DNA from: Anthoceros angustus
Lineage: Eukaryota > Plantae > Anthocerotophyta
Reading direction: 5' to 3'
Assembly (NCBI GenBank): GCA_010909165.1
Contig: VJWM01000255.1
Span: 62,001 to 126,000, forward strand
Length of the DNA stretch: 64,000 nt
Part shown: positions 2,998 through 44,917 of the stretch, piece after piece
Layout of the letters: each line of letters opens with the position of its first letter
Position numbering within the stretch: the first letter of the stretch is position 1
The notes under the pieces: generated by a model
What the model was told of the DNA's origin: nothing
Databases searched by the model: none
What the model saw: the letters and a program-made list of their open reading frames with translations, nothing else
Position numbers and translations under genes: made by a program

Positions 2998-3030
2998 CCC
3001 GAGTGAAAATTGTTTGCTACTTCAAAATGT

Positions 3031-3235
3031 GTCCAAATGGCTTAGGCCAAATGGACACACATTTATAACAACGTCGTTATTAAGCATCCTGCATTTGGAT
3101 CGGTACTTAGATGGGGTGCCTAAAGGAAATCGGTGCAAGGAGCTTAAGCACACCATGGTACAAGTTGTCAAGTACCAAGTCCCATGATGGAAATCCGTCC
3201 TTAGTGGACTTCAATAAAATTCTTCTTCTTCTTCT
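3031..3235 (+). mobile_element. SINE- or LINE-3'-end-like dispersed repeat ending in AATAAA + (TTC)n
   Basis: About 205 bp ending ...gtggacttcaataaaattcttcttcttcttc. Reverse-complement homologues lie at 32128-32167, 42497-42888 and 44210-44390. Confidence 0.7.
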
Positions 3236-3525
3236 ACTCACATATGGATGGTACTCACATATGGATGGTAATCCTCGTGGGAAGAGCGGAAGTGTGCATG
3301 CGGTGGATGTCCATGGGGTCCAAGAAGGGTAAGGTAGCATAAAAATGGTACCCGGCATTGGGGAGATGGTTCTGATATTTCTCCCTTATAGTAGCGTGGA
3401 GAAAGGTTCTCATATATGTCGATTTTTAAAGAAAGAACAACTAGAAGTCGAATCAATATTATTTTAAATAAACAATACAAAAAAACTTAAATATATCTTA
3501 TAATGAGAGAGAAGAGTAGACGTTA

Positions 3526-22950: not shown

Positions 22951-23499
22951 CCGCACGTTAGTGTGTATTTTCTGTTTCTCGAAAGCAACGTGCTTGATCT
23001 TTTCAATTTGTGACTGTTCTTTCCTGCTTCTTTGTAGATACGCTGGTGTCCAAGCTTGTCCATCCATGTGGGATGGGTGCACCCAGTGTGTGTCCTTTTG
23101 TACCTTGAATTCCACCAAGAACTGCAAGTGTGCACTATTGAAGTGAAGTTGAGAAGGGCTTGAGAATACTCCAGGTTGCTGTGAGTGTAGGGCCTGTACT
23201 GCTGAAATCGCCCGTGCGCTCTCTTGGGGGATTAACCTCCCACCATAAGTGAGTGCCGACTGTCTGATCCAGCTCTTTGTTCGGGTTTGCTCGTTTGCTC
23301 TTTGTCCATCCTCCCCTGAGATCTACCATCATAAAGTTAGATGTTAACTCTATGATAGTCAACGGCAGAACAAAACAGAGGGTGTAGAATCATCATCTTC
23401 GACGATATATCACATTGGAAATGGACAGTAGAGTCACCCAAAGGATCCTATTGGAAACGGGTTGCTGGACAATTGATATATTTTTTAAAGCCATTTAAG

Positions 23500-24665
23500 G
23501 GTTTTATAAGTTTAGTGACTTTATCTCTAGTTTTTCTTTCTCAACTTGGAGATTTTCACAAGCAAGTTATGTAGTCTCTGAGGGACATTATCGGCCCAAG
23601 TTGTTTAGCGTTGTGCTCGATCTTGAACACCCATTTGGATCCTATGCACTAACTTCCTTGGGGTAGAGGAGTGATTTTCTAAGTTTTGTTCTTCATAAAT
23701 GAGTTATACTCACTATCCAGGGCTTCTTTCCACTTCTTCGCCTTTGGCCCTTCCAAGGCTTCCTTCAAGTCTTGCGGCTCATCAGCATATGTTAACATAG
23801 CCTCTTCGTATTTACATACATTCATGGACTCCAAAATTTGCTGCAAAGGTTTCCTTCGCCTTGTTGATCTCCTGATCAGGGTTGGCGGCTCTTCTTGAAT
23901 TCTTCGATCTCGCTCCTCTTCATCATCCTCGACATCCAGGGCTTCTCTGCCTCCTATGTGACCTTGTGGTAGAGCTTGCTCATGCTCAAGAACGAGTTGA
24001 GCATGCTCAAGAGTAGGTTGCTCAAGAACCAGGTCTTGTGCTTCTTCACGCTCCTTCAACTCCTTGATGACAACTTGCGTTGCTCCCACTCCTTTGTTAG
24101 GTTCCACAACCTCATGAAAAACAACATCCCTACTAAAGATTACTTTCTTGGTTGTAGGGTCGTATAATCTATACTCTTTTACTTCATCAGAGTACCCAAG
24201 CATGATGCACTGGATGCCTTTAGGATCCCACTTGGTTCGGTTTTGCTTTGGAACATCAGCATAAACCTCAGAACCAAAGATCCTAAAATGACTCACGTCA
24301 GATTTGACACCAGACCATGCCTCCTTCGGGGTCATTCCAGATATAGCTCTGATTGGAACTCTATTTAAAACATAAATTGCTGTAGCAACATCCTCTCCCT
24401 AAAAACGTACCTCCAACCCACTTTGATGGAACATGCACTTGGCCGCCTGCACTAGGCTTCTTAGCTTGCGCTCCGCCACTTCATTTTGCTCTGATGTATC
24501 ACGAATTGTTAGTTGCTGAATGCCATGCTCCTTGCAAAAGCTTTTGAATTGAGAAAGAGTGTATTCTCCTCCTTTGTCACTCCTCAGAGTCTGGAGGCAT
24601 TCTGCAGTTTCGTTCTCCACAAAGACTTTCCACTCTTTGAATGTCTTGTAGAGTATATCCAATGT
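23500..24665 (-). mobile_element. Ty1/Copia pol fragment (integrase core, GAG-pre-integrase/SH3-like region, start of RT), degenerate
   Basis: 'LRSDKGGEY...FCKEHGIQ...EQNEVAERK', 'TPKEAWSG...SHFRIFGS...KWDPKG..C..LGY', 'EP.....A....KWKEALDSEYNS', 'IGSKWVFK', with in-frame stops. Confidence 0.92.
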
Positions 24666-24674
24666 ATACGGTGT

Positions 24675-24798
24675 ACTAGACTTTACCACGAATACTAATG
24701 CTATGTGTTTACTACTGATATTTTACTATAGAAGTAGTAATATCCATTGTAAAATCCATAGTAATGTCCATGGTAAAAGTATACTTTTCCTAGTAGTG
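24675..24798 (-). mobile_element. CACTA (En/Spm) transposon terminus
   Basis: The reverse complement of the right end reads CACTACTAGGAAAAGT. It is preceded by clustered subterminal repeats (tttaccac / tttactac / ccatggtaaaa), and it truncates the Copia fragment. Confidence 0.7.
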
Positions 24799-25173: not shown

Positions 25174-25342
25174 GTATTATTCTCAGCCTTAAGTGCACTA
25201 ATTTCCTTGTGCGGTAAGGATTGCTTGAATGGATGTTGACATGGTATCGGCTATGTGTAATGTTTCACATTTCTTTATGGCAGACATGGCATTGAAGAAC
25301 TGCAGGATGTTTCCCCATGCTGGACAAGACACCACGTCAACT

Positions 25343-25622
25343 TTGGTGAGTTTGTATCTCTGGAGGATTCTGGGAATCACGGTCTTGGCTTCCATGGAGC
25401 GGAAGTTGAGCCCCAGACAAATCCGTGGCCCAGCGCTGAAAGGGATGTAGACCAGCGCGTTTCGGGAGGTTGCCGCGGACACTTCGTGGGGCTTGAAATC
25501 CAAGTAGTCATCGCCCCAAATCTCCGGCAACTGATGCATCACGACGATGGGAATTTGCACAAATGTGCCAGGAAGCATCTCCATGTTCCCAAGCTTGTGC
25601 CGCTCCTTCACCACCCGTGACA
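25343..25622 (-). pseudogene. Cytochrome P450 C-terminal fragment (CYP72-clan-like)
   Basis: 'RVVKERHKLGNMEMLPGTFVQIPIVVMHQLPEIWGDDYLDFKP...YIPFSAGPRICLGLNF..MEAK': intact heme-binding FxxGxRxCxG, damaged PERF motif, and no N-terminal ~350 aa. Confidence 0.88.
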
Positions 25623-26343
25623 AGCTGCAGGCCGCCCCGGCCCCGCTGCGTTCGGCCGCGCCTCGGCCTCGCCTGTCCGCGCCCTCCCGTCCCGCGGCCT
25701 CGACCCGTCCGCGCGCTTCGACCCGCGCCCTCCCGTCCTCGCACCTCCCCACCCCGCCTCCCACAACACCACGCCCTCCCCGCGTCCCGTGCCCTCCCGC
25801 CACACCACGCCCTCGCATCCCCGCGCCCTCCTCGTCGTCGCCTCCCGTCCTCGCACCCTCCCCGCCACAGCGCACCTCCCGTCCCTACCCACCCGCTCCC
25901 GACGCCAGGCCATGCCCTTCCCCACCCACCATTCTGTTCCCCGTCCACTGCGCCCCCATCCCAATCCGATTCCCGCTCTTGGATCCCTCTCCCGCTACCT
26001 TTAGATCGCTCCTGGCTTCCGCTCCCCGCTTCCTTCAGATCCTCGCTCTTGGCTTCCGCTCCACTCTTGGCTTCTGCTCCATGTTTATATGTTTGTCTTT
26101 GGCTTTCGTTTGTTTGAAACAGCCTAAGTTTAGTTCATACTCCTCGCGCACAGTTCTGAAATTAAGCATGGTTTATATCACAACCTCGTTGTGGTGTGGG
26201 TGCGCATACTAGGGTTGTGCCGTGCGTGCTCGGTAAAATACGGCAGTGACCGGCCCTGTATGGACCGTTACTGGTGTTGTGTGCAGTGCATACTATGATG
26301 AGAGAGAAATCGTGATACGTGGGGCATGGCATGCCACATGATA

Positions 26344-27989: not shown

Positions 27990-28285
27990 GGCACTAGTAA
28001 TCCTGGAGTGGTTTATTATGTCGATGGAATCCTCTCCTCCCTTGTAGATAGAAGGACATCGCATCGTTACAGAAGTTAATCGCATTGATGATCAGGTCGA
28101 GGACCATCGGATAAAGCTGGTTGTAGAAGAAATAGTCCTCTTGCGAGGCAGAGCCCGAGGACGATGTGTGCATGATGACGATGTATGTGTGACCTCAACA
28201 TGCCGGACTTGTAGCGCGCGAGGAATCTGGGGAGCTGAGTCATATATGTCAGGACTGTGCTGAATCGGATGCCCTCGGATGCTCC
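27990..28285 (-). pseudogene. MTPSL pseudogene fragment (C-terminal half)
   Basis: Frameshifted 'HPIQHSPD..QLPRFL.RYKSG...SSSGSASQEDYFFYNQLYPMV.DL...NFCNDAMSFY...EDSIDIINHSRI', homologous to 30543-31823. Confidence 0.88.
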
Positions 28286-28295
28286 TCATTTTCCA

Positions 28296-28690
28296 CATCA
28301 ACCGTGGGTGTCTGTTGCCTCCTTGCCAGATGGGTTGCTTTTCCTGGCTGGCTTACGTTTTGTGAATCGTCCCCCGTAGAGAGGAGAAGGTTGCGAGCCT
28401 GCTGGCGGCTGCAGTGGCTGCATTCTGGCCATGGAGGAGCTCCGAACCTTTATGATAGGCTTGTCCCCTGAACCGTGCCTCTTATTTTGGTGGTCCCTTG
28501 GATCGGGCAGCAGCCCATTTTCTTGTATTTGGCAGGTTGAGAGAAACAAGGCAGCTTTGGATGCGTCAGCTCTGTTGTTGGGAGCATCCAGGTGCCTCTT
28601 CAAATACATCTCCGACGAGCTACTAGGTCTCCCGCAGGAACAGGGTGAAGCTTCACCTTATTCTAATGGCATGCCATCAACATCCGTCTC
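28296..28690 (+). pseudogene. Duplicated fragment of the EF-hand gene (copy of ~21608-22010)
   Basis: Near-identical DNA: atcaaccgtgggtg...ccagatgggttgctt...atggaggagct...caggaacagggtgaa. Confidence 0.85.
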
Positions 28691-29314
28691 TTCCCGATGA
28701 CGTAAAGCGACCTCAAGACCTGGACATGAGAGAGAAACAGGCAATCGTCGTGGACAGATCTAGAGTCGAACCCTTCCAAGTTTTGTTCTCCCTTCGACAT
28801 GGTTGCGGAAACTGATACCAGGGCTCTCCCAATCGTCGGACTCGATTTCGTGTGTTTATATTTCAGAGACATGATGTGCTCCATTTCGTGTCTGTGATTG
28901 AGACATGATGTATCGTTCTACTTACATACCTACATTGCATGAAAAAATGTCACCCCTGGTGTCGGAAGGTCTCATCAAATGCTTCCTCAAAGTCGACAAA
29001 GCAAAATTATACAAGCTTCCCCACACATGCCCTCCTCCACCATCCCCTCTGGAATGAGCCATCTCATGCCTGGATCCGCCATAGCCTGGATGCACCCGGT
29101 TCCCTATAGCCGTTTTTTTACCGTGACCACGGTTCTGCCTGGTTGGGGACGTTTTCTCAACCATTCCTTGCGTCCTGCCCCGCGCTGGATGCGCCTTTTC
29201 ATCGCGGTCAATACGGTACAGACCGTGGCTTTCTGCTTTGAAAATAGGGGGCACACAAAATGGGTGGGGCATCCCGCCTCATGGTTTCGCGGTGAGCAAG
29301 CTTCTCGTCTCTGG

Positions 29315-30410
29315 GATAGTCTTGTGAATGGTGCCCCGCAGAGGAGCAAGTGGGGAGCCTGGTGGCGGCGGCAGAGGCCAGAAGAGCTGCCCGCCTTTAT
29401 GGTAGGTCTTGTCTCCTGAACCGTGCCTCGTTTTGGTACTCCCTTGGAGCGGGCGGCAGCTCATTATCTTGCATCTGGCAGGCTGAAAGAAACAAGGCAG
29501 CTTTTGATGCAGTCAACTTTTTGTCCGGATGGAAGGGAGCATCAAGGTGAGTCTTCAGACACATCTCCGTTGAGCTACTAGGTCTCCAGCAGCGACAGGG
29601 TGAACCGCCTCCTTAGTCTGATTGTTCGCCATCAGCATTCACAATGCCGAGTCTTGCCCACAAGGAGGAATGAGGGGAGCCGGTGCTGAATTCGAAGGCT
29701 ATGTGGGATGGGTGGGAGCCTCGGTGGCCTGGTGACTGTGGACCAGGTGACCCCTAGCAGCTACCAGCTTGCCTTGCCCTTGCCCGAGTTTCTTCCGCTT
29801 TGAGAAACAGGATGCATTGAACACAGCCTGCTGGCAAGGTCACGAATTTGTGCAGCAATTCGCCAGTGCGGAAAGGAACTCATTTCTGGCCGAACACGGT
29901 GCTATTGAACCACCTATCATGTACTTACAGCCTGCAGTGAGTAAAGCCAAGATTGATCATCTTACAAGTGCAAAGCTGGTCAGGGCTGCCCTGCTGTTAA
30001 GCCAGGTACTGCACGTTAGTGTGTATTTTCTGTTTCTCCATAGCAACTTGATTGATCTTCTCAAGTTGTGACTGTTCTTTCCTGCTTCTTTGCAGTTATG
30101 TACTCTGGTATCCAATCTTGTCCATCCATGTGAGACGATGGAGAATACTACAGGTGGCTGTGAGTGTACGGCCTGTATTGCTGAAACCGCCCGTGCGCTC
30201 TCCCGGATGCCGATGTCTCAGCATGCTGAGCCAGCTCTTTGTTTTTTGTTTTGTCCAGCCTTCCTGAGATGGATTCTAACATGGTAAAGCTAAATTTTAA
30301 GTCGATGAAAGTCAAAACGTAACGGCCAACCAGAAACCAGAACGGAGTGTGAAGAGTCATCATCTTCAACGATACATAGATACATTACCTTGGAAATGGA
30401 TATTAGAGTT
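29315..30410 (+). pseudogene. Duplicated, internally deleted fragment of the EF-hand gene plus its 3' flank (copy of ~21680-23430)
   Basis: Shared blocks: tgccccgcagaggagcaag, cctcggtggcctggtgactgtgga, gcaaagctggtcagggctg, catcatcttc..cgata. Confidence 0.85.
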
Positions 30411-30542
30411 AAGTGAGATTTCATACTTATCTAACAATCATCATTACCACACCCACATTGCACTTTCTGCTCGTTCTCAATCTGGATAGTACAGAAGTAG
30501 CTGCAGTGAGCACACTCTGATTGTCTTGTACGTGTTGAAAGC

Positions 30543-31823
30543 CTATGCCCAGAAGCCGCCGTCATACCACCCACCCAGAACTTCGTCCAGTCGATACCGT
30601 TTGATCCCGATATGCCAACTCATGTATCCCTGAAAGAATTTCACAATCCTGTCCTTGATTGCATCAGAACCCGTCCTATCGGCCAGGGCCATCACTCTTG
30701 TCCTCGCCAGGATGACAGCCTCCACTCTGTCCCGAAGAGAGTGAAGAAGCGGCAGGCTGTGAATCCTGGAGTGGCTCACAATGCCGATGGCGTCCTCTCC
30801 TTGCTGTAGCTCCTTGTAGAAGGACAACACATCGTTGCCGAAGTCGAAACAATCCATGAGGTCGGGAACCATCGGATACAGGCTGTTGTAAAAGAATCGG
30901 TCATCTTGCGACGCAGAGTTCGAGGACGATGGTTGCATGATGACGAAGTATGCGTAGACCTCAGCTATGCCAGACTTGTAGCGGAAGAACCTGGGGAGCT
31001 GAGGCATGTCAGAAGTGTACTCAATCGGATGCTCCTCATAGTGCTGCTCCTGCAGGTTGGCCTCCATGAAGTCAAACATGGCCTTGATCATGAGGCTGTG
31101 CAGCCGGATGTCCGTGGGCAAGAAGGGGTTCTGGTCCGTCTTGAGGAAGACGATGAATTTCTCCAGCACCTCGTGCAGGTCGCCCCGGCCGGGGTACCGC
31201 CTCGCGTATCCCTCTGGGTCGGTGAACTTCATCTGAAACAAGCGCAAGTCCTCCAGGTATCTCTCTCGCGCCGCCCCTTTCAGATTCCCTGCCAGATCGT
31301 CCACGAATATGGCCAGAGCCGTGAAATGTCCGATCTTTGCTTGCAGGTCGACCGGGTGGAAGCTGTATATTAGATTACCAAAGCCAGCGGCCACTTTGAT
31401 TAACCCTTCCGGCAGGTGGGATCCGCCGTTTGCTTTCAGCCCTGCGGCGACGGTGTCCAGCAGCTCAGGGTAGCAGAACTGCGGGGACTTGGAGAAGGAC
31501 ACGCTTTGCAGGAAATCAATATACACACGCCTCAGCACGCTGGTGTTCATGCCACCGCCACCTTCATCGCTCCTCACAGGCCTGCCAACGGGAGCATTCT
31601 TGGCAGGAGCAGCGGACTCTTCCTGGCGTCTCATAGAAACAGAAAGAGAATCAACACGCGGGGCCTTGTGCTTCAAGCTGGAAGCAACTGGAAGTCTCAA
31701 GACCAAAGAATTCGCAGCGGCTTGTTCTTGTTGTAGCAAAGCAACTGCCCTGCAGCTCCTGCTACTTGTAAAGACACACATCGATATCACACTGGCCGTG
31801 GCCGTTAACCTGCACACATCCAT
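30543..31823 (-). CDS. Microbial terpene synthase-like protein (fungal trichodiene-synthase/Tri5 fold), intronless, 426 aa; MTPSL copy 1
   Basis: Asp-rich 'IFVDDLAG', sensor Arg 'FRYKSG', NSE motif 'NDVLSFYKE', C-terminal 'KRYRL'. About 90 aa of Ser/Ala/Arg-rich N-terminal extension. The ATG was chosen by homology with copy 2 (MDVCRL). Confidence 0.92.
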   Translation of the reverse strand: MDVCRLTATASVISMCVFTSSRSCRAVALLQQEQAAANSLVLRLPVASSLKHKAPRVDSLSVSMRRQEESAAPAKNAPVGRPVRSDEGGGGMNTSVLRRVYIDFLQSVSFSKSPQFCYPELLDTVAAGLKANGGSHLPEGLIKVAAGFGNLIYSFHPVDLQAKIGHFTALAIFVDDLAGNLKGAARERYLEDLRLFQMKFTDPEGYARRYPGRGDLHEVLEKFIVFLKTDQNPFLPTDIRLHSLMIKAMFDFMEANLQEQHYEEHPIEYTSDMPQLPRFFRYKSGIAEVYAYFVIMQPSSSNSASQDDRFFYNSLYPMVPDLMDCFDFGNDVLSFYKELQQGEDAIGIVSHSRIHSLPLLHSLRDRVEAVILARTRVMALADRTGSDAIKDRIVKFFQGYMSWHIGIKRYRLDEVLGGWYDGGFWA

Positions 31824-32327
31824 ATTGGGCCCAAGAATATACAAGGAACAAAACAATATACAGGGCCTCAGCACAAAGAGGCAGCGTCTGTACTCTCCTC
31901 TGCCAGTTGGTGGGCACTGGGCACACATGATCTCACCTATTATACGTACTCTCCTCTTCCACTTGGTGAGCACTGGGCAGACATAATCTCACCTGTTATA
32001 TTATATTATATTATATTATATATATTTTTTCGGGAAGACGGTATGCTGAAACGATTCTTGGCAAGAACGATATGCTGAAACGATTCTTGGCAAGAACCTC
32101 CAAGGTTCTGGACAGAAGACAAAAAAGAAATGGAAGAAGAATTTTATTGAAGTCCACTAAGGACAGACTTTCTAGGAATGGCCCTTTCGAGATTCCCGAC
32201 CCCTGACATATGTTACTGTATCGCTCCACCCCTTTCACATATTCCCAGGCAGCGGACTGCATCTGTACTTGTCCTTACATAAGCGCCGGCCTTTCACATA
32301 TTCCCAGGCAGCGGACTGCATCTGTAC

Positions 32328-32764
32328 CAGGGTGTCATTTTGACCGAGTACTAGCTCAGTCCCCGGGACCGCCTAGCCTGGCTACGCTCGGTCCCGGACC
32401 GAGCAGGGACCGTGCCTTTTTGCGACCCTTGGTCATTAAATATAATAAATATTAAATAAATAATTTATAAATAATAATATAAAAGACTGCAGACTGCGGA
32501 GTCCACAGGCTGCAGCCCAGCCGGCAGACTGCAAACTGCGTCCATAATAAGATGTCCATGTGTCCATAATAAATATAAATCCTTGGATATAAAATTAAAT
32601 AATTTACTAATTTTAAACCGTACCTTTTATGAACCCTCGGTCCCATAAGGTAATAGGAGACCGAGGGTGGGGACCGGACTCCTGAAGAACCTCCGGTCCC
32701 GTGTTTTTTTTAACACATGCCGGGACCGGGACCGAGCTTGGGACGGGGTCAAAATGACACCCTG
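32328..32764. mobile_element. hAT-family MITE, 437 bp, perfect 18-bp TIRs and 8-bp TSD
   Basis: ATCTGTAC|CAGGGTGTCATTTTGACC ... GGTCAAAATGACACCCTG|ATCTGTAC, with GGGACC/GGTCCC subterminal motifs. Confidence 0.95.
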
Positions 32765-32869
32765 ATCTGTACTTGTCCTTACGTTAGCGCCCGCCTGGCT
32801 GCGCCACCCAGCACCTATGCCGCGCACCTTGACACCAACTGCAGGCAGTGCCCAGCCCAACTTGTCGGG

Positions 32870-34745
32870 CAGGGGGCAGGAGGCATGGGGCAGGGGGCAG
32901 GCGGTTTATTTGTCGGCAATATGACCAAGAATCTCCTAATATGGAATACCGATGTGGTCACTCAGCATCGTGTGTGTGACTTTGTTTTTTATGGGTGTAC
33001 GCTACGGAAACATCTTTCATATACTTACGTACAATACACATATAATACGTGCCACATCAGCTTGTGTAGTTTACGCGGGGCAAAGCTTTTCTAGGACACG
33101 ATGATAGCATGGTGTTCCGATTGCGTCATGCACATGTTTTCTTTTTAGGGTTTTGGGGTTCCATGTTAAACAGACGGCCAAGACACACATACTGCACCTC
33201 CATATGGGGCAGGCCTAGGAAACGTTGCAGTCCTGTATACAGCCAATGCCAAACATTGCAGCCTTGCACGTAAAGGCAAAGGCACTCAGCCGCGCCGCAA
33301 ACATAGATGATGAGTGTAGCACAAATGCAATTGCAAACGGTAAGCGCAGCGCAAACGCAACCACTCACATATAGCGCCCAGTGCCGTAATGGCGCGCAAT
33401 GCAAATGACCCCAAACTCAACCCTAAACCCAAGAGATGAAAATTTTCTGTGTATCGTGAAAGCTTTGTGTGCATCATGGGGTAGGTTGACAACATCGGTG
33501 CACTGGGGGCCGCAGCCCCGACCGATGAGGTCATGCGTGACATACCGAAATAGTTCCGCCGTATGCAGCGGGACTATTTCTTTTTGTCCACAACCCTAAA
33601 AACCTGTGGATGCCGCGTGACCAGATCGGTATTCCATACTCCTATGTCTACATCGATGTGGACTTTTTAATGATTCCTTTCCGTATGCAGGGAGGCTTTC
33701 AAGGATACCATCTCTTATTGCATGTTGCTCCTCAGCCACATGGAAGGCTTAGAGCGCCGGCCAGCCGGCACCCAGATTGCGGATGCCCAAGACACACATT
33801 GCGGAGAGGCGATGGGCGGCGGGCGGAGGCATGGGGCGGGCGGCGGTTTATTTGTCGGCAATATGACCAAGAATCTCCTAATATGGAATACCGATGTGGT
33901 CACTCAAAGATCGTGTGTGACTTTGTTTTTATGGGTGTACGCCTTTTAAACATCTTTCATATACTTACGTACAATACACATATAATACGTGCCACATCAG
34001 CTTGTGTAGTTCACAGGCAAAGCTTTTCTAGGACACGATGATAGCATGGTGTTCCGATTGCGTCATGCACATGTTTTCTTTTTAGGGTTTTGGGGTTCCA
34101 TGTTAAACAGACGGCCAAGACACACATACTGCACCTCCATATGGGGCAGGCCTAGGAAACGCGCCTGTGATATGTAATGCCAAACATTGCGCCTTGCACG
34201 TAAAGGCAAAGGCACTCACGCTACAATAAACATAGATGATGAGTGTAGCACAAATGCAATTGCAAGCGGTAAGCGCAGCAAACGCAACCACTCACATATA
34301 GCGCCCGGTGTAATGGCGCGCAATGCAAATGACCCCAAACTCAACCTAAACCCAAGAGATGAAAATTTTACATGTATCGTGAAAGCTTTGTGTGCATCAT
34401 GGGGTAGGTTGACAACATTTGCTTGGGGCCAGCCACCGATGAGGTCATGCGTGACATCGAAATAGTTCCGCCGTATGCGGACTATTTCTTTTGTCCACAA
34501 CCCTAAAACTGTGGATGCCGCGTCATTTCCAGATTCCATACTCCTATGTCTACATCGATGTGGACTTTTTAATGATTCCTTTCCGTATGCAGGGAGGCTT
34601 TCAAGGATACCATCTCTTATTGCATGTTGCTCCTCAGCCACATGGAAGGCTTAGAGCGCCGCCACCGGCGGCACCTGATTGGATGCCCAAGACACACATC
34701 GCACTCCATATGGGGCGGGCGGGAGGCATGGGGCGGGCGGGAGGT
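32870..34745. repeat. ~940-bp tandem duplication (2 copies) of TE-like sequence
   Basis: ggtttatttgtcggcaatatgaccaagaatc occurs at 32903 and 33845. The second copy is colinear but carries many 1-3 bp deletions. Confidence 0.92.
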
Positions 34746-35749
34746 CGAGGGGGACGACCCATGGAGGGGCCTACAGTGTCCTCCAGATTCACGGGTATGA
34801 AGACAGGGACTCGTGTGGGAAATGAAGGCAGGGTGGGAACGATGCAACAGGTTATAGTAGTCGGTCATAAACCGAGGCTCCAGTTGGCGGCAAAAAGAAA
34901 AAAGAAGTCCAAGAAGGATACAGGGAGTGAAGCTCATCAGGATAACATAGCGATTGTGCATGTGCGGACAAATGAAGAAGGACTCGAAGATGCCATTCCG
35001 GAATCGGAGCCATTGACAAGAATCAGGGACTCTAACAGCGTCTGTGTAGAAAGGGGTTTCTCCTGTCAAAAGGGGTTTTGGAAAAAATCCCCACCCTATT
35101 TCGCCGGAAATTGAAGTTGTTTTTGTAAAATTGTTGGTTTTTGTAGGTCTTCATCCATCGGTTTCGGGAATTCTCGGCTCCGGCACCACTTCCTGTCAAG
35201 TCATTTACACCGCGCTGGCGCCTTGTACTCAGGTTCATGGCGATTTGGTCAGTGTGATGAAGGGCCAGTGACCTCATTGTTCTACAATTTCGTCATGTCC
35301 GTAGTTTCTGCATTTTGTGTGGTTTTGTATGTTTTTGTATACCAGGGGGGCCTAAGCGCGCATAAGTGCGCGCCTAAATAACGCTATGCGCAAACTTGTG
35401 CACGCACTGTGCAAAAAGAACGCAAAAAATGATCTTCTAATGGAGAAACATGTCCTTTTGGAGGTCTGAGGATGTGTCGGAACTCCCGACAAAATAAGAA
35501 GTAGTAGACATCGGCGGAGGTTTACCGAGACTGCTCTCATATATCTATCTTATGTCCTAATGCGACGAAGAACACCCTATCCCCTTTTTATCCTTTACGG
35601 TATTTCCGTCTCTTGCGGCAGTGATCTAGTACCGGGTTATCATCAAACATGCCAGGGGGGCCCAGCTGGGTGAACAAGTGCGTGCACCAGGGGGCAAGGG
35701 GGCCCAGGTGTGCGCACCAGGGGGCAAGGAGGCCCAGGTGCGCGCACCA

Positions 35750-36375
35750 AGGTCAAGACCAACTTGTCTTGACAATACAAGTTGGTGGTGTGCCCGTACC
35801 AAAGGCCTCTCGGATTGATGATGAAGTTCATCAAAACATTCTCCAAAGAAGGAGATAGGATTCTGGACTGTTGCGCAAGAAGTCGGACTACAACACTGGC
35901 AGCATTGCTTTCTGGACGCAATTGTATTGCCATAGAAGCTGACCTCCTCTGTACTGGTTATATCCCACAATGCATCCATGGTTTCGAGGTTTTGCCAGAC
36001 TAGAAAGAGGAGCTCACATTTGATGCCCAGCGGAGAGGAGCAGCACAGTTCTGGGCCAAAGAGGTTTGTATAAGTGAAAAAAATTGTTTGAAGGCTCAGG
36101 TTGTTCCCCTTAGTGCAAGGAGGATGAAAACGCAAACAGGTGACTTGCTGGAGGAAGGATAACAAACCCTGGATACTGTATGGTAGTCTGCGGGTGGTGG
36201 GGACAAGGAGGAAGGAGACAACGAAGAGGATGAAGACGCGAAGGCTTTGGCAGAAACTGACAACTTTGACGCAGTAGAATTGGAACGCATGCGCAACCTA
36301 ACAGTTGTTTTAGATTCAGAAGCCACCCAAGCCCAATATGTGTCTCAGATCAGTCCGCATGAGCGATCTTTGTAG
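35750..36375 (+). pseudogene. Decayed beta-class N4-cytosine/N6-adenine DNA methyltransferase (N6_N4_Mtase C-terminal half) with an acidic tail
   Basis: 'VVCPYQRPLGLMMKFIKTFSKEGDRILDCCARSRTTTLAALLSGRNCIAIEAD' aligns with the consensus P-x-QKP--L---LI---S--GD-VLDPF-GSGTT--AA---GR--IGIE-D. The frame continues through TAG/TAA stops into an E/D-rich tail. Confidence 0.75.
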
Positions 36376-36549
36376 AGGGAAGACTATTTTTGGCAGACAC
36401 AAGAGGTTTTTGAAACTGTGAGATCCTGATTTCCTTTGAGTACTTGTGAGAAACCATAGCCGTGGGCAAAGAAGTTACTGGGCTGCGCCAACTAAGAACC
36501 TTTTGTTTCATTCAATTTTGAATCTGTAGTTTTCCGCTAAGAAGAGTTT

Positions 36550-37075
36550 CTAGCATGGTCCAGTTGACAATGGAATCGCCATAATGCGCAATTCTGGAAC
36601 GGTGTCTTTTTTGTGAAGGGGGTTTCGGAAGTGTGGAACGGGGTTCGTTATTAACCCCCTTCCAAGATTATCGTGTTTCACGTTCTTCCTGTTCATGGGC
36701 CTTAGGCTCTTGTAGAGATGTTTGCCCCTGACCAGGTCTGTAGGTTCACTGACCTGGTCCCTTTTGCCTTTAGGTAGAGCCTTCATGGCTGTGTGGCATC
36801 GATAGCTCTGCTGCTTGGAAGCATGACACACTCAACCTGGCACTATTGTATTTCCACTACTAGACTTTTCTGGAAAGAATCTCATCAGCCATTTTCTCAA
36901 AGTCCCAAGGACCTTCAATATCTGCTCTTACGGTGGACTCAAGCAACCTTTTGATTTCCAGAGGCTCTTGCCAAAAATTCCCAATCACTGGGTTCATAAA
37001 CTTGCACATGGCCTAGTGAAACCTCTTCTTCAGTTTCTGTGTGAGTGTGTACCTTCAACTACCCATCTTGCACAA
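36550..37075 (-). mobile_element. Degenerate transposon accessory ORF, possibly CACTA TnpA/PTTA-like
   Basis: Stop-riddled frame 'KLKKRFH*AMCKFMNPVIGNFWQEPLEIKRLLESTVRADIEGPWD...'. The resemblance is weak. Confidence 0.3.
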
Positions 37076-37289
37076 CAAAAACACTTAGGCCAGTCAAAGT
37101 AAAGGTCAAATTAAACCAGACAACAACCTGGAATGAATTGGACTGACAAGTGGCTTCGTCGAGATCTGAGGTAGGGACTTAATAGTGCTCGTCCCTATCA
37201 ACCTTGGGCTTGGTAGCCCCATCGAGCTCGCGATCGGCCTCCATATGCATGCCATGGTGAACCTATGTTGCACCTTCCGCCCGAACTCG

Positions 37290-37845
37290 CAGCCTTTGCA
37301 CTATGTGCAAGGAGAGCAAAGGAGCTGCTAGGGATGTTGCCTATGTCCACACCTTGGTTGCTAGCATGGAGATCTCTGTGAATCAATATCAAAGTTTGTT
37401 GGAGATGTTCAACAACATTGATGACTTGGAGAACTATAGGTAACTTCAACATGTACGTCGCCCGACAGCCTAGCTAGGAAGGCCTCGTGCTGTTTTGTCT
37501 CCGTTTGTCGTATGCAGCAATCCTGCTGCTTGGATTGGGACCTGTAGAACTATCAATAAGCCACGGCTAATGAATGCCATGAAGAGGGACAAGGATGTGC
37601 ATCTCTGACAACGGCTTGTCACAAAACCCTCTAGATTTGTCACATTAAGTGAGAATTCCACCATAGATTTAAAATGGCGTTGCATTGTGTAGATAGCAGC
37701 TTTCATGCAACCCTTCGGGGCCAAGGGTAATGGGGGACGACGAAAGTTTGAGGGTGTCCAGTAGCTCAGGATAGCAAGACTACGGGGACTTGGAGAAGGA
37801 CGTGCTAGCTTTGCAGAAAATCAATATAACACTGTTGTTCATGCC
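37290..37845. pseudogene. EF-hand gene fragment (+, 37290-37752) fused directly to an MTPSL fragment (-, 37753-37845)
   Basis: A copy of ~22298-22752 is followed by ggtgtccagtagctcagg...ggggacttggagaaggac...gttcatgcc, which matches 31452-31553. Confidence 0.85.
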
Positions 37846-38240
37846 TTTGCATGTTCATTCTAATCAAAACTTGTGGCCGCATATCCCTTTTTGGTTGCAC
37901 TCGCCCAATCGATTTTTTTGGGAATGGATAGGGTAAAAAGAAGAGAGAATAAATGTACACATACGTTTTTACATTCATAATTAAAAAAAAGAACTAAAAG
38001 CCGGGTACAGCAGCAAGTCTTAAATTCCTAACAGACCTCGGCTCCCGCCTCGAACGCGTCTCGGCCCCAGACTCGGCCGCTCCCGTACGCCAGCGAACGG
38101 ACGCGCGTCGGGGCGCACAGCCTAAAACGGTCGAGGCCGTTAGTTCTCGGCAATGACGCCTTTCCACGCGCCCGTTCCCTAATACATTGCATTTCTTGCT
38201 TGTTCTCAATCTGGATAGTACAGAAGTAGCTGCAGAAAGC

Positions 38241-39512
38241 TTATGCCCAGAAGCCGCCGTCATACCACCCACCCAGAACTTCATCCAGTCGATACCGTTT
38301 GATCCCGATATGCCAACTCATATATCCCTGAAAGAATTTCACAATCCTGTCCTTGATTGCATCAGAACCCGTCCTATCGGCCAGGGCCATCACTCTTGTC
38401 CTCGCCAGGATGACAGCCTCCACTCTGTCCCGAAGAGATTGAAGAAGCGGCAGGCTGTGAATCCTGGAGTGGCTCACAATGCCGATGGCGTCCTCTCCTT
38501 GCTGTAGCTCCTTGTAGAAGGACAACACATCGTTGCCGAAGTCGAAACAATCCATGAGGTCGGGGACCATCGGATACAGGCTGTTGTAAAAGAAGCGGTC
38601 ATCTTGCGACGCAGAGTCCGAGGACGATGGTTGCATGATGACGAAGTATGCGTAGACCTCAGCTATGCCAGACTTGTAGCGAAAGAACCTGGGGAGCTGA
38701 GGCATGTCAGCAGTGTACTCAATCGGATGCTCCTCATAGTGCTGCTCCTGCAGGTTGGCCTCCATGAAGTCGAACATGGCCTTGATCATGAGGCTGTGCA
38801 GCCGGATGTCCGTGGGCAAGAAGGGGTTCTGGTCCGTCTTGAGGAAGACGATGAATTTCTCCAGCACCTCGTGCAGGTCGCCCCGGCCGGGGTACCGCCT
38901 CGCATATCCCTCTGGGTCGGTGAACTTCATCTGAAACAAGCGCAAGTCCTCCAGGTATCTCTCTCGAGCCGCCCCTTTCAGCTTCCCTGCCAGATCGTCC
39001 ACGAATATGGCCAGAGCCGTGAAATGTCCGATCTTTGCTTGCAGGTCGACCGGGTGGAAGCTATATGTTAGATTTCCAAAGCCAGCGGCCGCTTTGATTA
39101 ACCCTTCCGGCAGGTGGGATCCGCCGTTTGCTTTCAGCCCTGCGGCGACGGTGTCCAGCAGGTCAGGGTAGCAGAACTGCGGGGACTTGGAGAAGGACAC
39201 GCTTTGCAGGAAATCAATATACACACGCCTCAGCACGCTGGTGTTCATGCCACCGCCACCTTCATCTCTCATGAACGGCCTGCCAACGGGAGCAGGCTTG
39301 GCAGGAACAGCAGCCCCGCCCTGGCATCTTACACAAACAGAAGGAGAGCTAAACCACGTTGCCTTCCAGGCCTTGTACTTCAAGGTAGAAGAAACTGGAA
39401 GTCTCCAGCCCAAAGAAATCGCAGCGCGTTGTTGTAGGAAAGCCACTGCTGTGCAGCTGCTGCTACTAGTAGCGATACACCTCACACGCGGGCTTAACCT
39501 GCACACATCCAT
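38241..39512 (-). CDS. Microbial terpene synthase-like protein (trichodiene-synthase fold), intronless, 423 aa; MTPSL copy 2
   Basis: Same DDL, RYKSG, NDVLSFYKE and RYRL motifs as copy 1. The core from MNTSVL onward differs from copy 1 at about 7 residues. A TATA-like GTATATAT lies about 100 bp upstream on the minus strand. Confidence 0.92.
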   Translation of the reverse strand: MDVCRLSPRVRCIATSSSSCTAVAFLQQRAAISLGWRLPVSSTLKYKAWKATWFSSPSVCVRCQGGAAVPAKPAPVGRPFMRDEGGGGMNTSVLRRVYIDFLQSVSFSKSPQFCYPDLLDTVAAGLKANGGSHLPEGLIKAAAGFGNLTYSFHPVDLQAKIGHFTALAIFVDDLAGKLKGAARERYLEDLRLFQMKFTDPEGYARRYPGRGDLHEVLEKFIVFLKTDQNPFLPTDIRLHSLMIKAMFDFMEANLQEQHYEEHPIEYTADMPQLPRFFRYKSGIAEVYAYFVIMQPSSSDSASQDDRFFYNSLYPMVPDLMDCFDFGNDVLSFYKELQQGEDAIGIVSHSRIHSLPLLQSLRDRVEAVILARTRVMALADRTGSDAIKDRIVKFFQGYMSWHIGIKRYRLDEVLGGWYDGGFWA

Positions 39513-40629
39513 GCTGTGCAAAGGATTGAAGATACAAGTAACAAAAAAAACCCGTCAGCAGCGCAAAAGAGGTGGCTCCCGTTCTCTCGTCCGCCACTGG
39601 AAGGGCACATATATACTAGCTCTTAGCAAGTAGTCTCGTTCTCGTGCTTCGAGAAAGAATTATTATTCCCGGGAATTTTGGATTTCGCTTCTTTAACGGA
39701 GCGGTGCGCTCTACCTTTCGGGTCATGGTGGTGGTGTTCACTTGATCTTGTTCGGGCTATGATCCACTTGGATCCTTTTCGGGCTATGGTGGTGGTGTTA
39801 AACCGGATCTCTTTGTGCGGAGCTTCTCCCTGTGGCCGAGAACTTCCTTGATCTCTTGGTTTCTATGGTGGTGGAGCAAGGAGTTCACACGTGGATCTCT
39901 TTGGGCGGAGCTTCTCCATTGGATTCTACGCCTGAGAACTTCCTTGAATCCCGTTCCAGACTTTATGGTGGTGGTGTTCTTTTGTATGGTAGATGTTTCT
40001 CACTTCTCAAAACATGTACAAGCAAAGGCCTTTTCATGCCTTTTGTTTTCGCTCTGCAAAGGTCTATGATGAACCCTATCCTATCTGGCCTAGGTGTAGC
40101 AAAACATACACTACGTGGGCATGGGGCGTGTCCGGCCTAGGTGTAACCAAACATACTATGTGGGCATGGGGCGTATCATGAAGATGCCCCATGCAAATGG
40201 CTATGGCGGTGGTGTTCCCCCATATCCCTTTGTACATACGGAGATTGTGTATTGGATTTTGTGACATGTAAAGTGAAATAATTTGATCGAGATAATATTT
40301 ACCGTAGACTGTATAAGGTATGACGGTGTCCTTTCACAGCAAAAGGCGAGCCTCTCCACACATGCCCTCCTCCACTTCCCCTCTGGGATGGAATGAGGCC
40401 TCAATCCGCCGTAGATCGGTGTAAGCAACGCCCCGTTCCTTATATCCGTTTCTTTCCCGTGACCACGGTTCTGCCTGGTTTGGACGTTTTCTCAACCATC
40501 CCTTGCCTCCTGCCCCGCGCTGGATGCGCCTTTTCATAGTGAAGTACGCAAACCATAGCTTTCTGCTTCGAATATCGGGAGCACACGAAACTAATGGGGC
40601 ATCCCGCCTCACGGTGAGCACGCTCCTCG

Positions 40630-42305
40630 TCGCTGGCTTAAGTCTTGTGAATTGTGCCCCGCAGAGCAGCAAGTTGGGAGCCTGGTCGCGGCTGCAGAGG
40701 CCAGAAGTGCTGCGGACCTTTAGGGTGGGTCTTGCGGCCCGCCCGACCCAGCCTCTTTGGTATACCCTTGGAGCGGGCAGCAGCACATTTTCTTGCATCT
40801 AGCAGGCTGAAAGAATCAAGGCGGATTTGGACGCAGTCAACTCTGTTGTTTCCAAGGGAGCATCAAGGTGCCTCTTCAAGTACATCTCCGTTGAGCTACT
40901 AGGTCTCCAGCAGCAGCAGCGTGAACCTTCTCCTTATTCTGAGTTTTCGCCAACAGCTTTCACAATGAGGAGTCATGACCAGAAGGAGGAATGAGGAGAG
41001 CGGTTGCTGCAGGCTATGTCGGATGGCCATGGGTGGCAGCCTTGGTGGCCTGGTGACTGTGGAGACCCATATGGCCCCGCTAGCGACCAGGTTGTCCTTG
41101 CCTTGCCCTTGCCCTTGCCCGAGTTTCTTCAGGATGCATTGAACACAGCCTTCTGGCAAGGTCACGAATGTGTGCAGCAATTCGCCAGTGAGAGGTCTCT
41201 GACCATGTATGTACGTACGTATTTTATTTTAACCGTATAGTTTGACCTTTGTCGCTTCATATCGTTTTAGGGTTTACCGTTCAGCCATGGTACGAACCGA
41301 GTGGTGAGTGGGTGTCCGAACCGGCGGTGATGTGGAGAAACCGGAGAGAAGGGGGAGAGAAACGAATGAGATAAAAGTAAAAGGTTTTTAATTTAAAAAT
41401 TAAAGTAGTAAAAAGTAAAATATATTTATTATTTCATCTCAATTCAACCAAATAATGGAGAATTTGCAGATAATTTAATTTATAAATCAGGTAGATCTAA
41501 ACTAAATTACACCCCACTACATTAGTTAACTACATGCCACATCGTCTTTGTTGTAGTTCATGTTGTTCAAATTTGTCCAATTAGTTCATCTAGTTCAAAT
41601 TTATCACACGGCCAACGAGCAGCAGAGCTGCAATTCAACTAGACCCAAACCGTCAGGGGTGCTTAGTGTATATCGATTTCTCACTTTAGGATTGATATGG
41701 TGACAACTTTCATGGCATCTATTCCAACTCACCGTTTATCACCCATCAACTAAGGCTCTGTCGGATGAGTGGCATCCTCAATGGCCTAGCTAGTGACTTC
41801 GGAGACCCATTTGAGCCCTACCAGGTTGCCGTTTCCCTTGCCCTTCAAGCCCTGGCCCGAACTTCTTCCGATTTGAGAAATAGGATGCATAGACTACAAC
41901 CTGCTGGCAAGCGCAAGCCCAGAATGTGCGCAACAACTAATAGAGCAATTTACGCACAGCACAATTTCCAGCTGTAATTCCAAGGCTTTGGAGCAAGGGA
42001 GCATAGCCTTTGCAACATGCGCAAGGACAGCAAAGCAGCTAGGGATGTTGTCTACATCCACACCTTGGTTACAAGCGTGGGGGCCTCTATGAAGGAGTAG
42101 CAAAGGTTGTTGGAGGTGTTTGACTTGGAGAACCTTGGGTAACTTCAACATGTACATTGCCCGGCAGCCTAGCTAGGAAGGCCTCTTGCTGTTTTATCTC
42201 CATTTGCTTCATGCAGCAATCCTGTTGCTATTGGGACCTGCAGAACTATCAGCAAGCCACGACTAATGGATGCCAGCAGCTCAGCGTAGCAGGACTACCG
42301 GGACT
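40630..42305 (+). pseudogene. EF-hand gene fragments (40630-41203 and 41755-42272) split by an AT-rich MITE-like insert, ending in a ~30-bp MTPSL remnant (42273-42305)
   Basis: DNA identity to 21680-22830. ccagcagctcagcgtagcaggactaccggg matches MTPSL ccagcagctcagggtagcagaactgcggg. Confidence 0.78.
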
Positions 42306-42496
42306 CAATTCATTTCAATTGTGGCGCTTTCTGTCGCATGTCCCTTTTTGGTTGCACTTTCATAGCTTAGGCACACCACAAAGTCTTACGTTCAAGTATG
42401 TGTCCAGCTTCTCGTGTGGCTTACCGAGATGGTCCCCACCACCAAAGTTGTTACATTTTTTTTTATATTTCTCATGGTGAGGGAAAACACTAGCTG

Positions 42497-42888
42497 AGAG
42501 AAGAAGAAGAAGAAGAATTTTATTTAAGTCCACTAAGGACGGATTTCCATCATGGGACTTGGTACTTAACAACTTATATCATGGTGTCCTTAGTGGACGG
42601 ATTTCCATCATGGGACTTGGTACTTAACAACTTATATCATGGTGTGTCTAAGCTACTTGCACCAAGGGCATCCACTCCCTTTAGGCACCCCATCTAAGTA
42701 CCGATCCAAGCTCAGGATGCTTAATCACGACGTTCTTATAAATGTGTCCATTGGCTTAAGCCATTTGGACGAGCACCAAGGGCATCCACTCCCTTTAGGC
42801 ACCCCATCTAAGTACCGATCCAAGCTCAGGATGCTTAATCACAGCGTTTTTATAAATGTGTCCATTTGGCCTAAGCCATTTGGACGAG
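42497..42888 (-). mobile_element. Copy of the (TTC)n-tailed retroposon-like repeat, with internal 58-bp and 114-bp duplications
   Basis: Reverse complement of 3031-3235 (gaagaagaagaattttatttaagtccactaaggacggatttccatcatgggac...ccatttggac). Duplicated units start at 42537/42595 and 42659/42773. Confidence 0.85.
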
Positions 42889-42950
42889 CTGTGGAGAGTC
42901 TACCTAGTGAGCTTGTTCTTGATTCAAGGCATTAACTAGTTGAGTACTAC

Positions 42951-43055
42951 AGACTCAAGTGTGTATTCTGTCACCAATTGGGCATACATAGCCAGACTCA
43001 AGTGTGTATTCGGTCACGAGTTGGGTATACATAGCCAGACTCAAGTGTGTACTCT
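42951..43055. repeat. 43-bp tandem repeat (~2.4 copies) that replaces the 3' end of MTPSL copy 3
   Basis: agactcaagtgtgta occurs at 42951, 42994 and 43037. Confidence 0.85.
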
Positions 43056-43104
43056 TTGACCCATTGAACGTAGACTGACCAATTGGGTGGAGATGCCACA
43101 GCGC

Positions 43105-43928
43105 CCCAGGAGGAACCTGGGGAGCTGTGGCATGTCAGCATTGTACTCGATGGGATGCTCCTCGTAGTGCTGCTCGTGAAGGTTGCCCTCAATGAAGTCG
43201 AATACGACTTGATCATGAGGGTGTGCAGCCGGAGCTCCGTGTGGAAGACGGGGTTCTGGTCCGGACGTCTTGACGTAAACCATGTATTTCTCCAGAGCAT
43301 CGTGCAGGTCCCCCCGGCCGGGGCACCGCCTCGCGTATCCCTCTGGATCGGTGAACTTCGAAAAAAGAGAATTCATCCGGAACAAGCGCATCTCCTCCAG
43401 GTATCTCTCTCGCGCCGCCCCTCTCAGCTTCCTTGGCAGATCTTCCACCATCATGGACCCATCGACCTGCAAGCCAAGATCGGACATTTCACGGCTCTGG
43501 TGGAAGCTGCATACAAGAGTCCCCAAGCCAGCTCCAGTTTTGATGTACTCTTCCGGCAGGTGGGATCCGCCGTTTGCTGTCACCCGTGCGGCCACGGTGT
43601 CCAGCAGCTCAGGGTAGCAGGACTCCCGGGAATTCGAGAAGGACATCCTCTGCAGGAAATCCGTGTACACCTGCGTCAGTACGCTGGTGTTTATGCTATG
43701 GCCACCGTCATCGAGGATCACCGGCCTGCCAGCGGCAGCGGCCCCGGCCTGGGATCTGATACAAACAGAAATACACGTCGTCTGGGGCTTGTGGTTCAAG
43801 CTGGAAGAAAGTGGACGTCTCAAGACCGAAGAATTCGAAGCGCCTTGTTGTAACAAAGCCACTGCTCTGCAGCTGCTGCTACTGGTACCCACACACCCCA
43901 GACTCGCTGTAAACACGTACAGATCCAT
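43105..43928 (-). pseudogene. MTPSL copy 3, pseudogene (micro-inversion, DD changed to ED, frameshift, 3' truncation)
   Basis: MDLYVF...NTSVLTQVYTDFLQ...CYPELLDTVAA...GGSHLPE...FTDPEGYARRCPGRGDLH...HYEEHPIEYNADMPQLPRFL, then lost. The NSE and RY motifs are missing. Confidence 0.9.
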
Positions 43929-44209
43929 CCTGGGCCCAAGAACTGAACATTCAAGTAACAAACAGCCCTTTTCAGCACACAAGAGACTGCTGCTGTTGTC
44001 TCGTTTGCCACTTTGGTGGGGAGACTCCTCCAATCCTAGGCCGTAGAATGGTGTTGGCCTAGGCCTACGTAATCTCACTTATTTTTATACTGCTGGAGGA
44101 AGTCTTAGAGGATATGCTCAAACAGTATCTTGGCAAGCACGTCCAAGGTTTTGGACAGACATGATTCCCAGGAATTTCCCTTTCGAGTGTCCCCGACTGA
44201 TATGAAGCA

Positions 44210-44390
44210 TTTCCGTCATGGACTTGGTACCCCACAACTTGTACCATGGTGTGCCTAAGCTAATTGCTCAAGGGCATCTTTGCCCTCTGGCACCCCATCT
44301 AAGTACCCATCTAGATCTAAACGTAGGCAAATGCTTAACAGCTACGGTTATTATTATAAATGTGTGACCATTTGGCCTAAGTCATTTGGC
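44210..44390 (-). mobile_element. Diverged copy of the (TTC)n-tailed repeat family
   Basis: ggacttggtac...caacttgtaccatggtgtgc...ggcaccccatctaagtacc...catttggcctaagtcatttgg. Confidence 0.75.
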
Positions 44391-44917
44391 CACTAGACTT
44401 TATTGCAGACCCGACTGATGACTTATAGTGTCCATCCAATCCTTCATTGACTTTAGGCAGGTTATGCCAAGTTCTAATCACATCGTATCAATCGAGGTCT
44501 CACCGACACGAAACTCCTGAACAACTCTAACTGCCTTAATAATGAATCGTCCTGCAGCCATGGGGTCCTGTGCGACTCAGGAGGTCTCACACAAAAGCCA
44601 GGACGACCTGCAACAGGGACGGTCCAGGGCACAGGAAAAAGCACGAGATGTCCTACAGTTCCTCGTGTTTTTTTTTGCTATGAATCTGTACACACGTTAG
44701 ATAGGCTATTTCAACACAGCTCTGCGCAAGAGCACAAACAGAGCACACAAAGTCTGCAGCACTGAGACAGTTCCTCGTATTCTAGTGTTTCGATTCCAGT
44801 GCCAGGCTATATAAAGTAGATGATTTAGTTTCAGTTCTCTTTACACTCAGGACCTGAAAACCAGGACATCACCGTCCCGCGCAAGGTCCGTTGATTCTTG
44901 ATTCTACACGATGTGGC

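Follow-up and report, generated by a model that had tools for sequence, protein, structure and literature searches.

On chromosome 6 of Marchantia polymorpha, five fungal-type genes of the microbial terpene synthase-like (MTPSL) class (Mp6g04580-04630; PMC12890914) form a tandem bryophyte cluster. In the hornwort Anthoceros angustus, the supplementary material of Zhang et al. 2020 (PMC7027989) treats four MTPSL genes as acquired from fungi in a transfer specific to bryophytes, grouped with liverwort and ascomycete homologues (Suppl. Fig. 85), and gives introns to AANG006699 alone among the four. The tandem-duplicate table of the same paper lists AANG014095 (scaffold128 92543-93550) and AANG014097 (scaffold128 100241-101272), both on the minus strand and both assigned to PF06330. 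The functional Anthoceros MTPSLs that have been assayed were all sesquiterpene synthases, according to the passage of PMC13364417 that cites Xiong 2018, and non-canonical DDx3 motifs are on record for MTPSLs (PMC6779861); the Anthoceros paper of Li et al. 2020 does not mention terpenes. Here we analyse 64,000 nucleotides of A. angustus (contig VJWM01000255.1, positions 62,001 to 126,000; hereafter the window), in which a tandem array like that of Marchantia holds intact and dead MTPSL copies side by side.

We read this locus as an array of TRI5-family MTPSLs that would descend from the known fungus-to-bryophyte transfer, shaped by duplication of a composite unit, by decay and by gene conversion of the catalytic core, and predicted to encode class I cyclases; we put the probability of this reading at roughly 85%. 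The window corresponds to A. angustus scaffold128:62001-126000, a coordinate offset of exactly 62,000. Subtracting this offset places AANG014095 at 30543-31550 and AANG014097 at 38241-39272, and at both mapped spans the published model (1008 and 1032 nt) begins with ATG, has no internal stop and ends at the stop of a window open reading frame (ORF); the published spacing of 7,698 bp is also that of the window ORFs. As coordinates, spacing, lengths and ATG-to-stop structure all match at this one offset, the two intact ORFs are AANG014095 and AANG014097. Both have thus been in print since 2020 as horizontally acquired (fungal), intronless, tandem-duplicated TRI5 genes, and the novelty that a preliminary description of this DNA had allowed for the locus falls away on the gene lists of PMC7027989. 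What is new is incremental throughout: dead MTPSL copies, co-duplicated pieces of an EF-hand-like gene, a conversion tract, and published gene models that are short at the N terminus. The first three of these do not appear in the passages retrieved from PMC7027989 and its supplements.

Counted from a conserved MDVC methionine and including the stop, the intact genes occupy 30543-31823 (AANG014095, 426 aa, full-length alignment; the 30.5-kb gene) and 38241-39512 (AANG014097, 423 aa; the 38-kb gene) on the minus strand. The frames around them are open over 30543-31973 and 38241-39521, and the true start of the 30.5-kb gene is probably the MDVC methionine at 31823. Both proteins match Pfam TRI5 (PF06330; E 1.4e-11 and 7e-12) with 44.3 and 45.3 bits against a gathering cut-off of 25.2, over profile positions 148-308 of 362. 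A phmmer search of PDB sequences with the 38-kb protein returned the sesquiterpene synthase SydA (E 1.7e-13) and Fusarium trichodiene synthase (E 2.9e-7), and a profile of seven hornwort sequences returned SydA (1.9e-19), trichodiene synthase (4.6e-13) and longiborneol synthase CLM1 (1.6e-9); all PDB matches of the intact proteins were fungal TRI5-family enzymes. In the phmmer alignment, query residues 307-415 lie on residues 202-310 of the trichodiene synthase chain. N330, S334 and E338 of NDVLSFYKE stand in register with N225, S229 and E233 of trichodiene synthase, NDVLSFYKE also lies opposite NDILSFYKE of SydA, and R409 and Y410 of K408-R409-Y410-R411-L412 fall on the diphosphate-sensing pair R304/Y305. 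The NDxxSxxxE residues and KRYRL are invariant across the seven hornwort MTPSL sequences. The preliminary description had named NDxxSFYKE and RYRL as a Tri5 signature, and the invariance and the register with trichodiene synthase bear it out. It had also described an Asp-rich motif cut down to DDL. The single Asp-rich element is indeed D175-D176-L177, invariant in hornwort MTPSLs and followed by A, T or S and then by G, T, V or E; its equivalence to the first Asp-rich motif DDxxD, whose TRI5 counterpart is D100-D-S-K-D, is presumed, as no sequence alignment covers this region.

Word-index protein searches returned only five database relatives, all MTPSLs of Anthoceros punctatus or A. agrestis at 48-73% identity, with ApMTPSL6 the closest to the 38-kb protein (73%). 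The whole protein, the seven-sequence profile and the C-terminal region were used as queries, and each found the same four or five Anthoceros entries. Placement among liverwort MTPSLs and fungal (ascomycete/Dikarya) enzymes is taken from Suppl. Fig. 85 of PMC7027989 and from PMC12890914. The intact ORFs are collinear with four of the five Anthoceros proteins over 97-99% of their length, consistent with intronless genes. Their neighbours, by contrast, include genes for RPL19e, an AFG1-like and a NUC153/ESF1-like protein that are broken into several ORF pieces, as intron-split plant genes are; CBS and RING genes, likewise intron-split, also flank the array. On the family profile, the fungal PDB matches and these intron-split neighbours, both intact proteins are fungal-type (TRI5-family) terpene synthases encoded in a plant nuclear genome, which agrees with the preliminary description both in this and in its contrast between intronless genes and intron-rich surroundings.

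MTPSL traces were mapped by tblastn with both intact proteins as queries on the entire window, together with self-blastn and word-7 blastn. The tblastn spans were 27993-28191, 30546-31973, 37708-37845, 38244-39521 and 43089-43982, and none lay elsewhere in the window. The array contains two intact genes, one truncated pseudogene and three fragments, 278, 83 and 33 bp long, all on the minus strand. All six traces of the preliminary description are therefore real, two of them only 83 and 33 bp long, and its picture of birth and death is apt for a locus where intact, truncated and fragmentary copies lie next to one another. The fragment at 27993-28276 is internal, corresponding to positions 778-1053 of the 38-kb coding sequence (tblastn E 2e-13); it shares 76% DNA (blastn) and 55% protein identity with the 38-kb copy, and its NSE region, the counterpart of NDxxSxxxE, is degraded. 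The 83-bp stub at 37750-37832 corresponds to coding positions 286-365, with 82-83% blastn identity to both intact copies (tblastn E 2e-5). The 33-bp mini-stub at 42273-42305 was detected by word-7 blastn and is 94% identical to pseudogene positions 43601-43631, 88% to 31457-31489 and 85% to 37758-37790 within the stub; tblastn at relaxed thresholds gave this trace no significance (E = 8). It is followed by a collinear 24-mer (42335-42358) that matches 37878-37901 and so mirrors the surroundings of the 37750 stub, and on this sequence match the mini-stub is the counterpart of that stub in a sister unit.

The pseudogene (43089-43928) retains codons 1 to ~276 (tblastn 53% identity, E 4e-89; aligned at the DNA level to the 38-kb coding sequence) and appears in the ORF list as a broken ORF at 43041-44078. 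Its ATG is kept, and its lesions comprise in-frame deletions of 12 and 18 nt, a 15-nt insertion, a +4/-1 frameshift pair and a change of DDL to EDL. Additionally, an inversion of ~60 bp (43440-43499) puts the segment coding VDLQAKIGHFTAL on the plus strand, as seen from a tblastn match of 93% over 14 aa and from the breakdown of the alignment. Homology stops near codon 276, with loss of the NSE motif and the Arg-Tyr pair, and tandem and very high-copy repeats lie beyond. The 3' end of the pseudogene unit is replaced by a very high-copy repeat at 42495-42889 with two 114-bp tandem units (word depth, TRF, blastn). Two sequencing runs were compared over window positions 38000-43990, a DNA run (X1) and a possible but unconfirmed RNA run (X2). 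The summed contig word depth of this repeat is ~28,000 against 14 in unique DNA, it is abundant in X2 too, and relatives of it lie at 3029-3242, 32125-32170 and 44209-44393.

Every MTPSL copy lies beside pieces of one neighbouring gene, as self-blastn shows, and the amplified composite unit of the preliminary description is upheld. The template, at 21601-23434 on the plus strand, is the 3' part of a plant gene of EF-hand-like type with open exon frames (self-blastn, exon peptides, EF-hand_7 E 0.035). From it derive four plus-strand pieces. Piece A (28289-28685; template 21601-22009; blastn 82%, divergence K 0.144) abuts the 28-kb MTPSL fragment on its 5' side and so does not converge on it. 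Piece B (29014-30409; template 21656-22232 and 22832-23434) carries stops and converges on the 30.5-kb gene. Piece C (37290-37747; template 22297-22740), also with stops, is joined directly to the 83-bp stub and converges on it and on the 38-kb gene. Piece D (40349-42275, in two parts, 40349-41180 and 41752-42275), again with stops, converges on the mini-stub and the pseudogene; template 21656-22232 recurs in it at 40622-41180 and template 22059-22578 at 41752-42275. Of the converging EF-hand sequence described earlier, the convergence thus holds for B, C and D and fails for A, and the EF-hand assignment is weak. In units C and D the order is the same, EF-like piece, stub, spacer, which indicates that the stub was already in the unit when it was duplicated. 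A 698-nt contig of X2, the run guessed to be RNA, matches piece D exactly at 40550-41247, with no X2 coverage on the MTPSLs; if X2 is truly RNA, the dead piece D is transcribed.

The patchwork of these copies bears on how they were amplified. A transposon that captures gene fragments, in the style of Pack-MULEs or Helitrons, would account for their abrupt junctions (for example 37747/37750 and 28276/28289) without unequal crossing-over or segmental duplication. The high-copy repeat lies at the edge of the pseudogene and turns up again upstream of the 30.5-kb gene, and identical transposon residues lie beside each gene of the Marchantia fungal-type MTPSL cluster (PMC12890914). However, no inverted repeats of at least 40 bp and no pairs resembling terminal inverted repeats were found in 23-45 kb, the copied pieces have single-copy read depth and hence form no repeat family, and every copy sits in one local array in one orientation. 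We therefore regard capture by a transposon as unlikely.

The two intact genes are far more alike in one part than in the rest. Their catalytic cores are ~98% identical (97-99% per 100 nt), with seven residues different, and their identity is ~70% over the first 280 nt of the coding sequence; homology is gone ~90 bp past the stop. By a 100-nt identity profile and divergence tests, the near-identical tract runs over 30455-31567 in the 30.5-kb copy and 38184-39265 in the 38-kb copy (both minus strand), covering the core and ~90 bp of 3' flank, and the divergence boundary near 39265/31567 is sharp. Between the intact genes the core has a synonymous divergence (dS) of 0.045, a nonsynonymous divergence (dN) of 0.009 and K 0.019, and the N-terminal presequence has dS 0.275, dN 0.267 and K 0.20. 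There are 17 differences in 1022 nt of core versus 47 in 269 nt of presequence (Fisher p 2e-17, all sites; p 3e-5 at synonymous sites). The core of either intact gene differs from the pseudogene by K 0.168, presequences differ by K 0.20-0.25 and EF-like flanks by K 0.14-0.225. The simplest reading of these divergences is that the duplications are old and that a tract of ~1.1 kb recently underwent interlocus conversion, which would have homogenised both cores. Duplication dates taken from coding sequence would be misled by such conversion. Judged from these rates, purifying selection acts on the catalytic core (dN/dS ~0.2) and the presequence has a dN/dS of ~1. The rapid evolution suggested earlier thus applies to copy turnover and to the presequence, and not to the core, which is constrained and homogenised. 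The chemical-defence or volatile role put forward alongside it, like the nature of the products, is conjectural.

The same pattern could instead reflect a duplication that was very recent and confined to the gene body, with no conversion, the presequences and flanks having come to differ by later rearrangement or fast divergence. Such a history fits the 98% identity of the core and the way homology ends abruptly, rather than by decay, ~90 bp past the stop. It fits poorly with presequences that are homologous and collinear at K 0.20 and dS 0.275, the level of other unit pairs, and that are each as near to ApMTPSL6 as to their partner. Moreover, pasting a 1.1-kb segment into an older paralogue is gene conversion itself. 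We find this account hard to sustain and retain conversion between older paralogues as the preferred reading.

Reads support both copies. X1 word depth is ~27-30 on the shared core pieces versus ~14 on unique flanks, and at five of five positions in the core the alternative letter is the base of the other paralogue, in three cases at about 13 of 25. Both intact copies are therefore present in the reads, although the sample may be the source of the assembly itself. The preliminary description had named mis-assembly as what would undo the array, and this doubling of depth on the core, with the bases of both paralogues in the reads, argues that the array is not mis-assembled. X1 contigs continue from within the 38-kb gene across its 5' flank and over most of piece D, and others join the 3' part of the pseudogene to the adjoining repeats. 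For all that the cores are nearly identical and the read contigs short, with a hole at 41.8-42.2 kb, an assembly artefact (duplicated haplotigs or a mis-join) or fungal contamination is very improbable, as depth doubles only on the shared core, paralogue-specific bases are present at ~13x each, flanks and presequences that are 15-25% diverged are not haplotigs, read contigs are unbroken over 39237-41734, and the neighbours are intron-split plant genes in agreement with the published annotation. X1 contigs are 1-2 bases shorter than the window at twelve sites, ten of them homopolymers (38691, 38972, 39543, 39565, 39669, 40217, 40378, 43250, 43310 and 43361) and two of other kinds (39687 and 39886). 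The assembly and this run thus disagree systematically in length. We tentatively take the homopolymer disagreements as technical, because in the window sequence both ORFs remain open and match their homologues collinearly.

The published models of AANG014095 and AANG014097 begin at internal methionines and omit 91 and 80 N-terminal residues, respectively. The omitted stretches (31551-31823 and 39273-39512) align to the N termini of other Anthoceros MTPSLs. They belong to an extension of ~87-90 residues of basic character, with many Ser, Thr and Ala and few acidic residues, that has no counterpart in SydA, judging from the offset of the SydA alignment. From its composition it looks like an organellar targeting peptide. 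The two presequences are 60% identical to each other versus 62-65% to ApMTPSL6. Just upstream of the conserved ATG of the 30.5-kb gene, a 56-bp tandem duplication within 31890-32000 creates an artificially long GTG-initiated ORF of 476 aa, and TATA-like runs occur near 31945 and 32020. A shared cyclase core behind freely evolving presequences might send the two proteins to different compartments or have them imported with different efficiency, an idea that we regard as a long shot. If true, one enzyme would reach different prenyl-diphosphate pools and hence yield different products, an effect that the published models would have hidden by leaving out the presequence.

Taken together, we propose the following history and mechanism. 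A composite unit, in which the plus-strand 3' part of an EF-hand-like gene converged on a minus-strand intronless MTPSL, would have been duplicated several times, leaving units that differ by K ~0.14-0.25. The copies would then have decayed unequally through deletion, small inversion, frameshifts and repeat insertion, with two intact genes, a pseudogene of the 5' two-thirds and three small fragments as the residue. Later, interlocus conversion over ~1.1 kb would have homogenised both cores, presequences and flanks staying apart. From what is known of the family, each intact protein would be a single-domain class I terpene cyclase, in which DDL, with the N330/S334/E338 triad, would coordinate the Mg2+ cluster and R409/Y410 would grip a prenyl diphosphate, most likely farnesyl diphosphate (FPP), whose ionisation would start cyclisation. 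Cyclisation of FPP is the best guess because of the sesquiterpene products of the functional Anthoceros MTPSLs assayed.

Several observations weigh against parts of this account. The N-terminal half of the proteins, DDL included, could not be aligned by sequence to any solved TRI5 enzyme with Pfam, PDB or profile searches, and it is the invariance of DDL that suggests a metal-binding Asp-rich motif. An AlphaFold model from a seven-row alignment is all-helical and poor (predicted local distance difference test, pLDDT, 47), and Foldseek with that model placed SydA, CLM1 and trichodiene synthase at the top over ~340 columns, with TM scores of just 0.33-0.44. Cyclase activity of both intact proteins is a prediction from homology. 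X2 has no contig on the intact genes or the pseudogene, which for a run that is only possibly RNA says nothing about silence. Two of the homopolymer sites (38691 and 38972) are one-base disagreements inside the 38-kb coding sequence. The EF-hand_7 match (E 0.035), from an exon-by-exon search, falls short of the Pfam threshold. Finally, a protein tree of eight rows, for which each break in the pseudogene and in the 28-kb fragment was bridged with an X, resolves just the pair of intact genes and leaves the order of duplications unsettled.

Other features lie within and near the array. The 5-kb insert that separates the two intact MTPSL units contains a relic of a bacterial-type N6/N4 DNA methylase (35782-36003, plus strand; PF01555 E 3.7e-8), which covers profile positions 163-212 only, and DNA methyltransferase genes derived from Actinobacteria are on record in bryophytes in the text of PMC7027989; the relic and that published transfer suggest two kinds of horizontally acquired gene within 5 kb. 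The same insert holds a tandem duplication of ~0.95 kb (32867-33843 versus 33814-34740, 89% identical). A last-exon fragment of a cytochrome P450 with the heme-binding region (Pfam p450 E 4e-17; best PDB matches of CYP3A type) adjoins a Ty1/copia integrase fragment, the pair lying at 25201-25629 and 23679-24689, respectively, on the minus strand. Inspection by eye of 25.9-28.0 kb showed no P450 exons upstream, so that the piece is probably a dead remnant rather than a partner enzyme.

The preliminary description was right in what it observed and for the most part in how it read it. As a discovery the locus carries little weight, as fungal origin, absence of introns and tandem duplication are in print and a comparable cluster has been described in Marchantia. 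Its practical bearing is on expression work with AANG014095 and AANG014097, whose annotated models lack a conserved presequence of ~80-90 residues, and on copy counts, which the pseudogene and fragments can confuse.

Set against known systems, the intact genes are the same as AANG014095 and AANG014097 in the tables of PMC7027989, with the same strand and stops, and differ in that the published models are shorter at the N terminus. They share 64-73% identity over their full length with MTPSL2, 5, 6 and 7 of A. punctatus and A. agrestis (Xiong et al. 2018, Phytochemistry 149:116), along with the presequence, DDL, NDVxSxYKE, KRYRL and membership of one clade. Those genes belong to other species, and the tree is a polytomy without one-to-one orthology to the window genes. 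Additionally, the functional ones are sesquiterpene synthases, whereas the window enzymes are known from their sequence.

Trichodiene synthase (1JFA), SydA (8YZX) and CLM1 (8H4P) align significantly with the C-terminal half of the hornwort proteins, with the NSE triad and the Arg-Tyr pair in register, and fungal TRI5 cyclases are single alpha-domain class I enzymes, as the hornwort proteins are predicted to be. The hornwort proteins differ in their low identity (~20%), in an N-terminal half beyond the reach of sequence alignment, in the reduction of DDxxD to DDLAG and in the extra N-terminal extension of ~90 residues.

The closest precedent for the architecture of the locus is the five-gene Marchantia cluster, which likewise has a recurrent residual sequence beside each copy and shows structural variation (PMC12890914). 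The flanks differ, being transposon remains in the liverwort and dead pieces of a host gene in A. angustus. The Marchantia cluster is, moreover, genetically associated with pathogen resistance (PMC12890914), whereas the hornwort array is known as DNA sequence.

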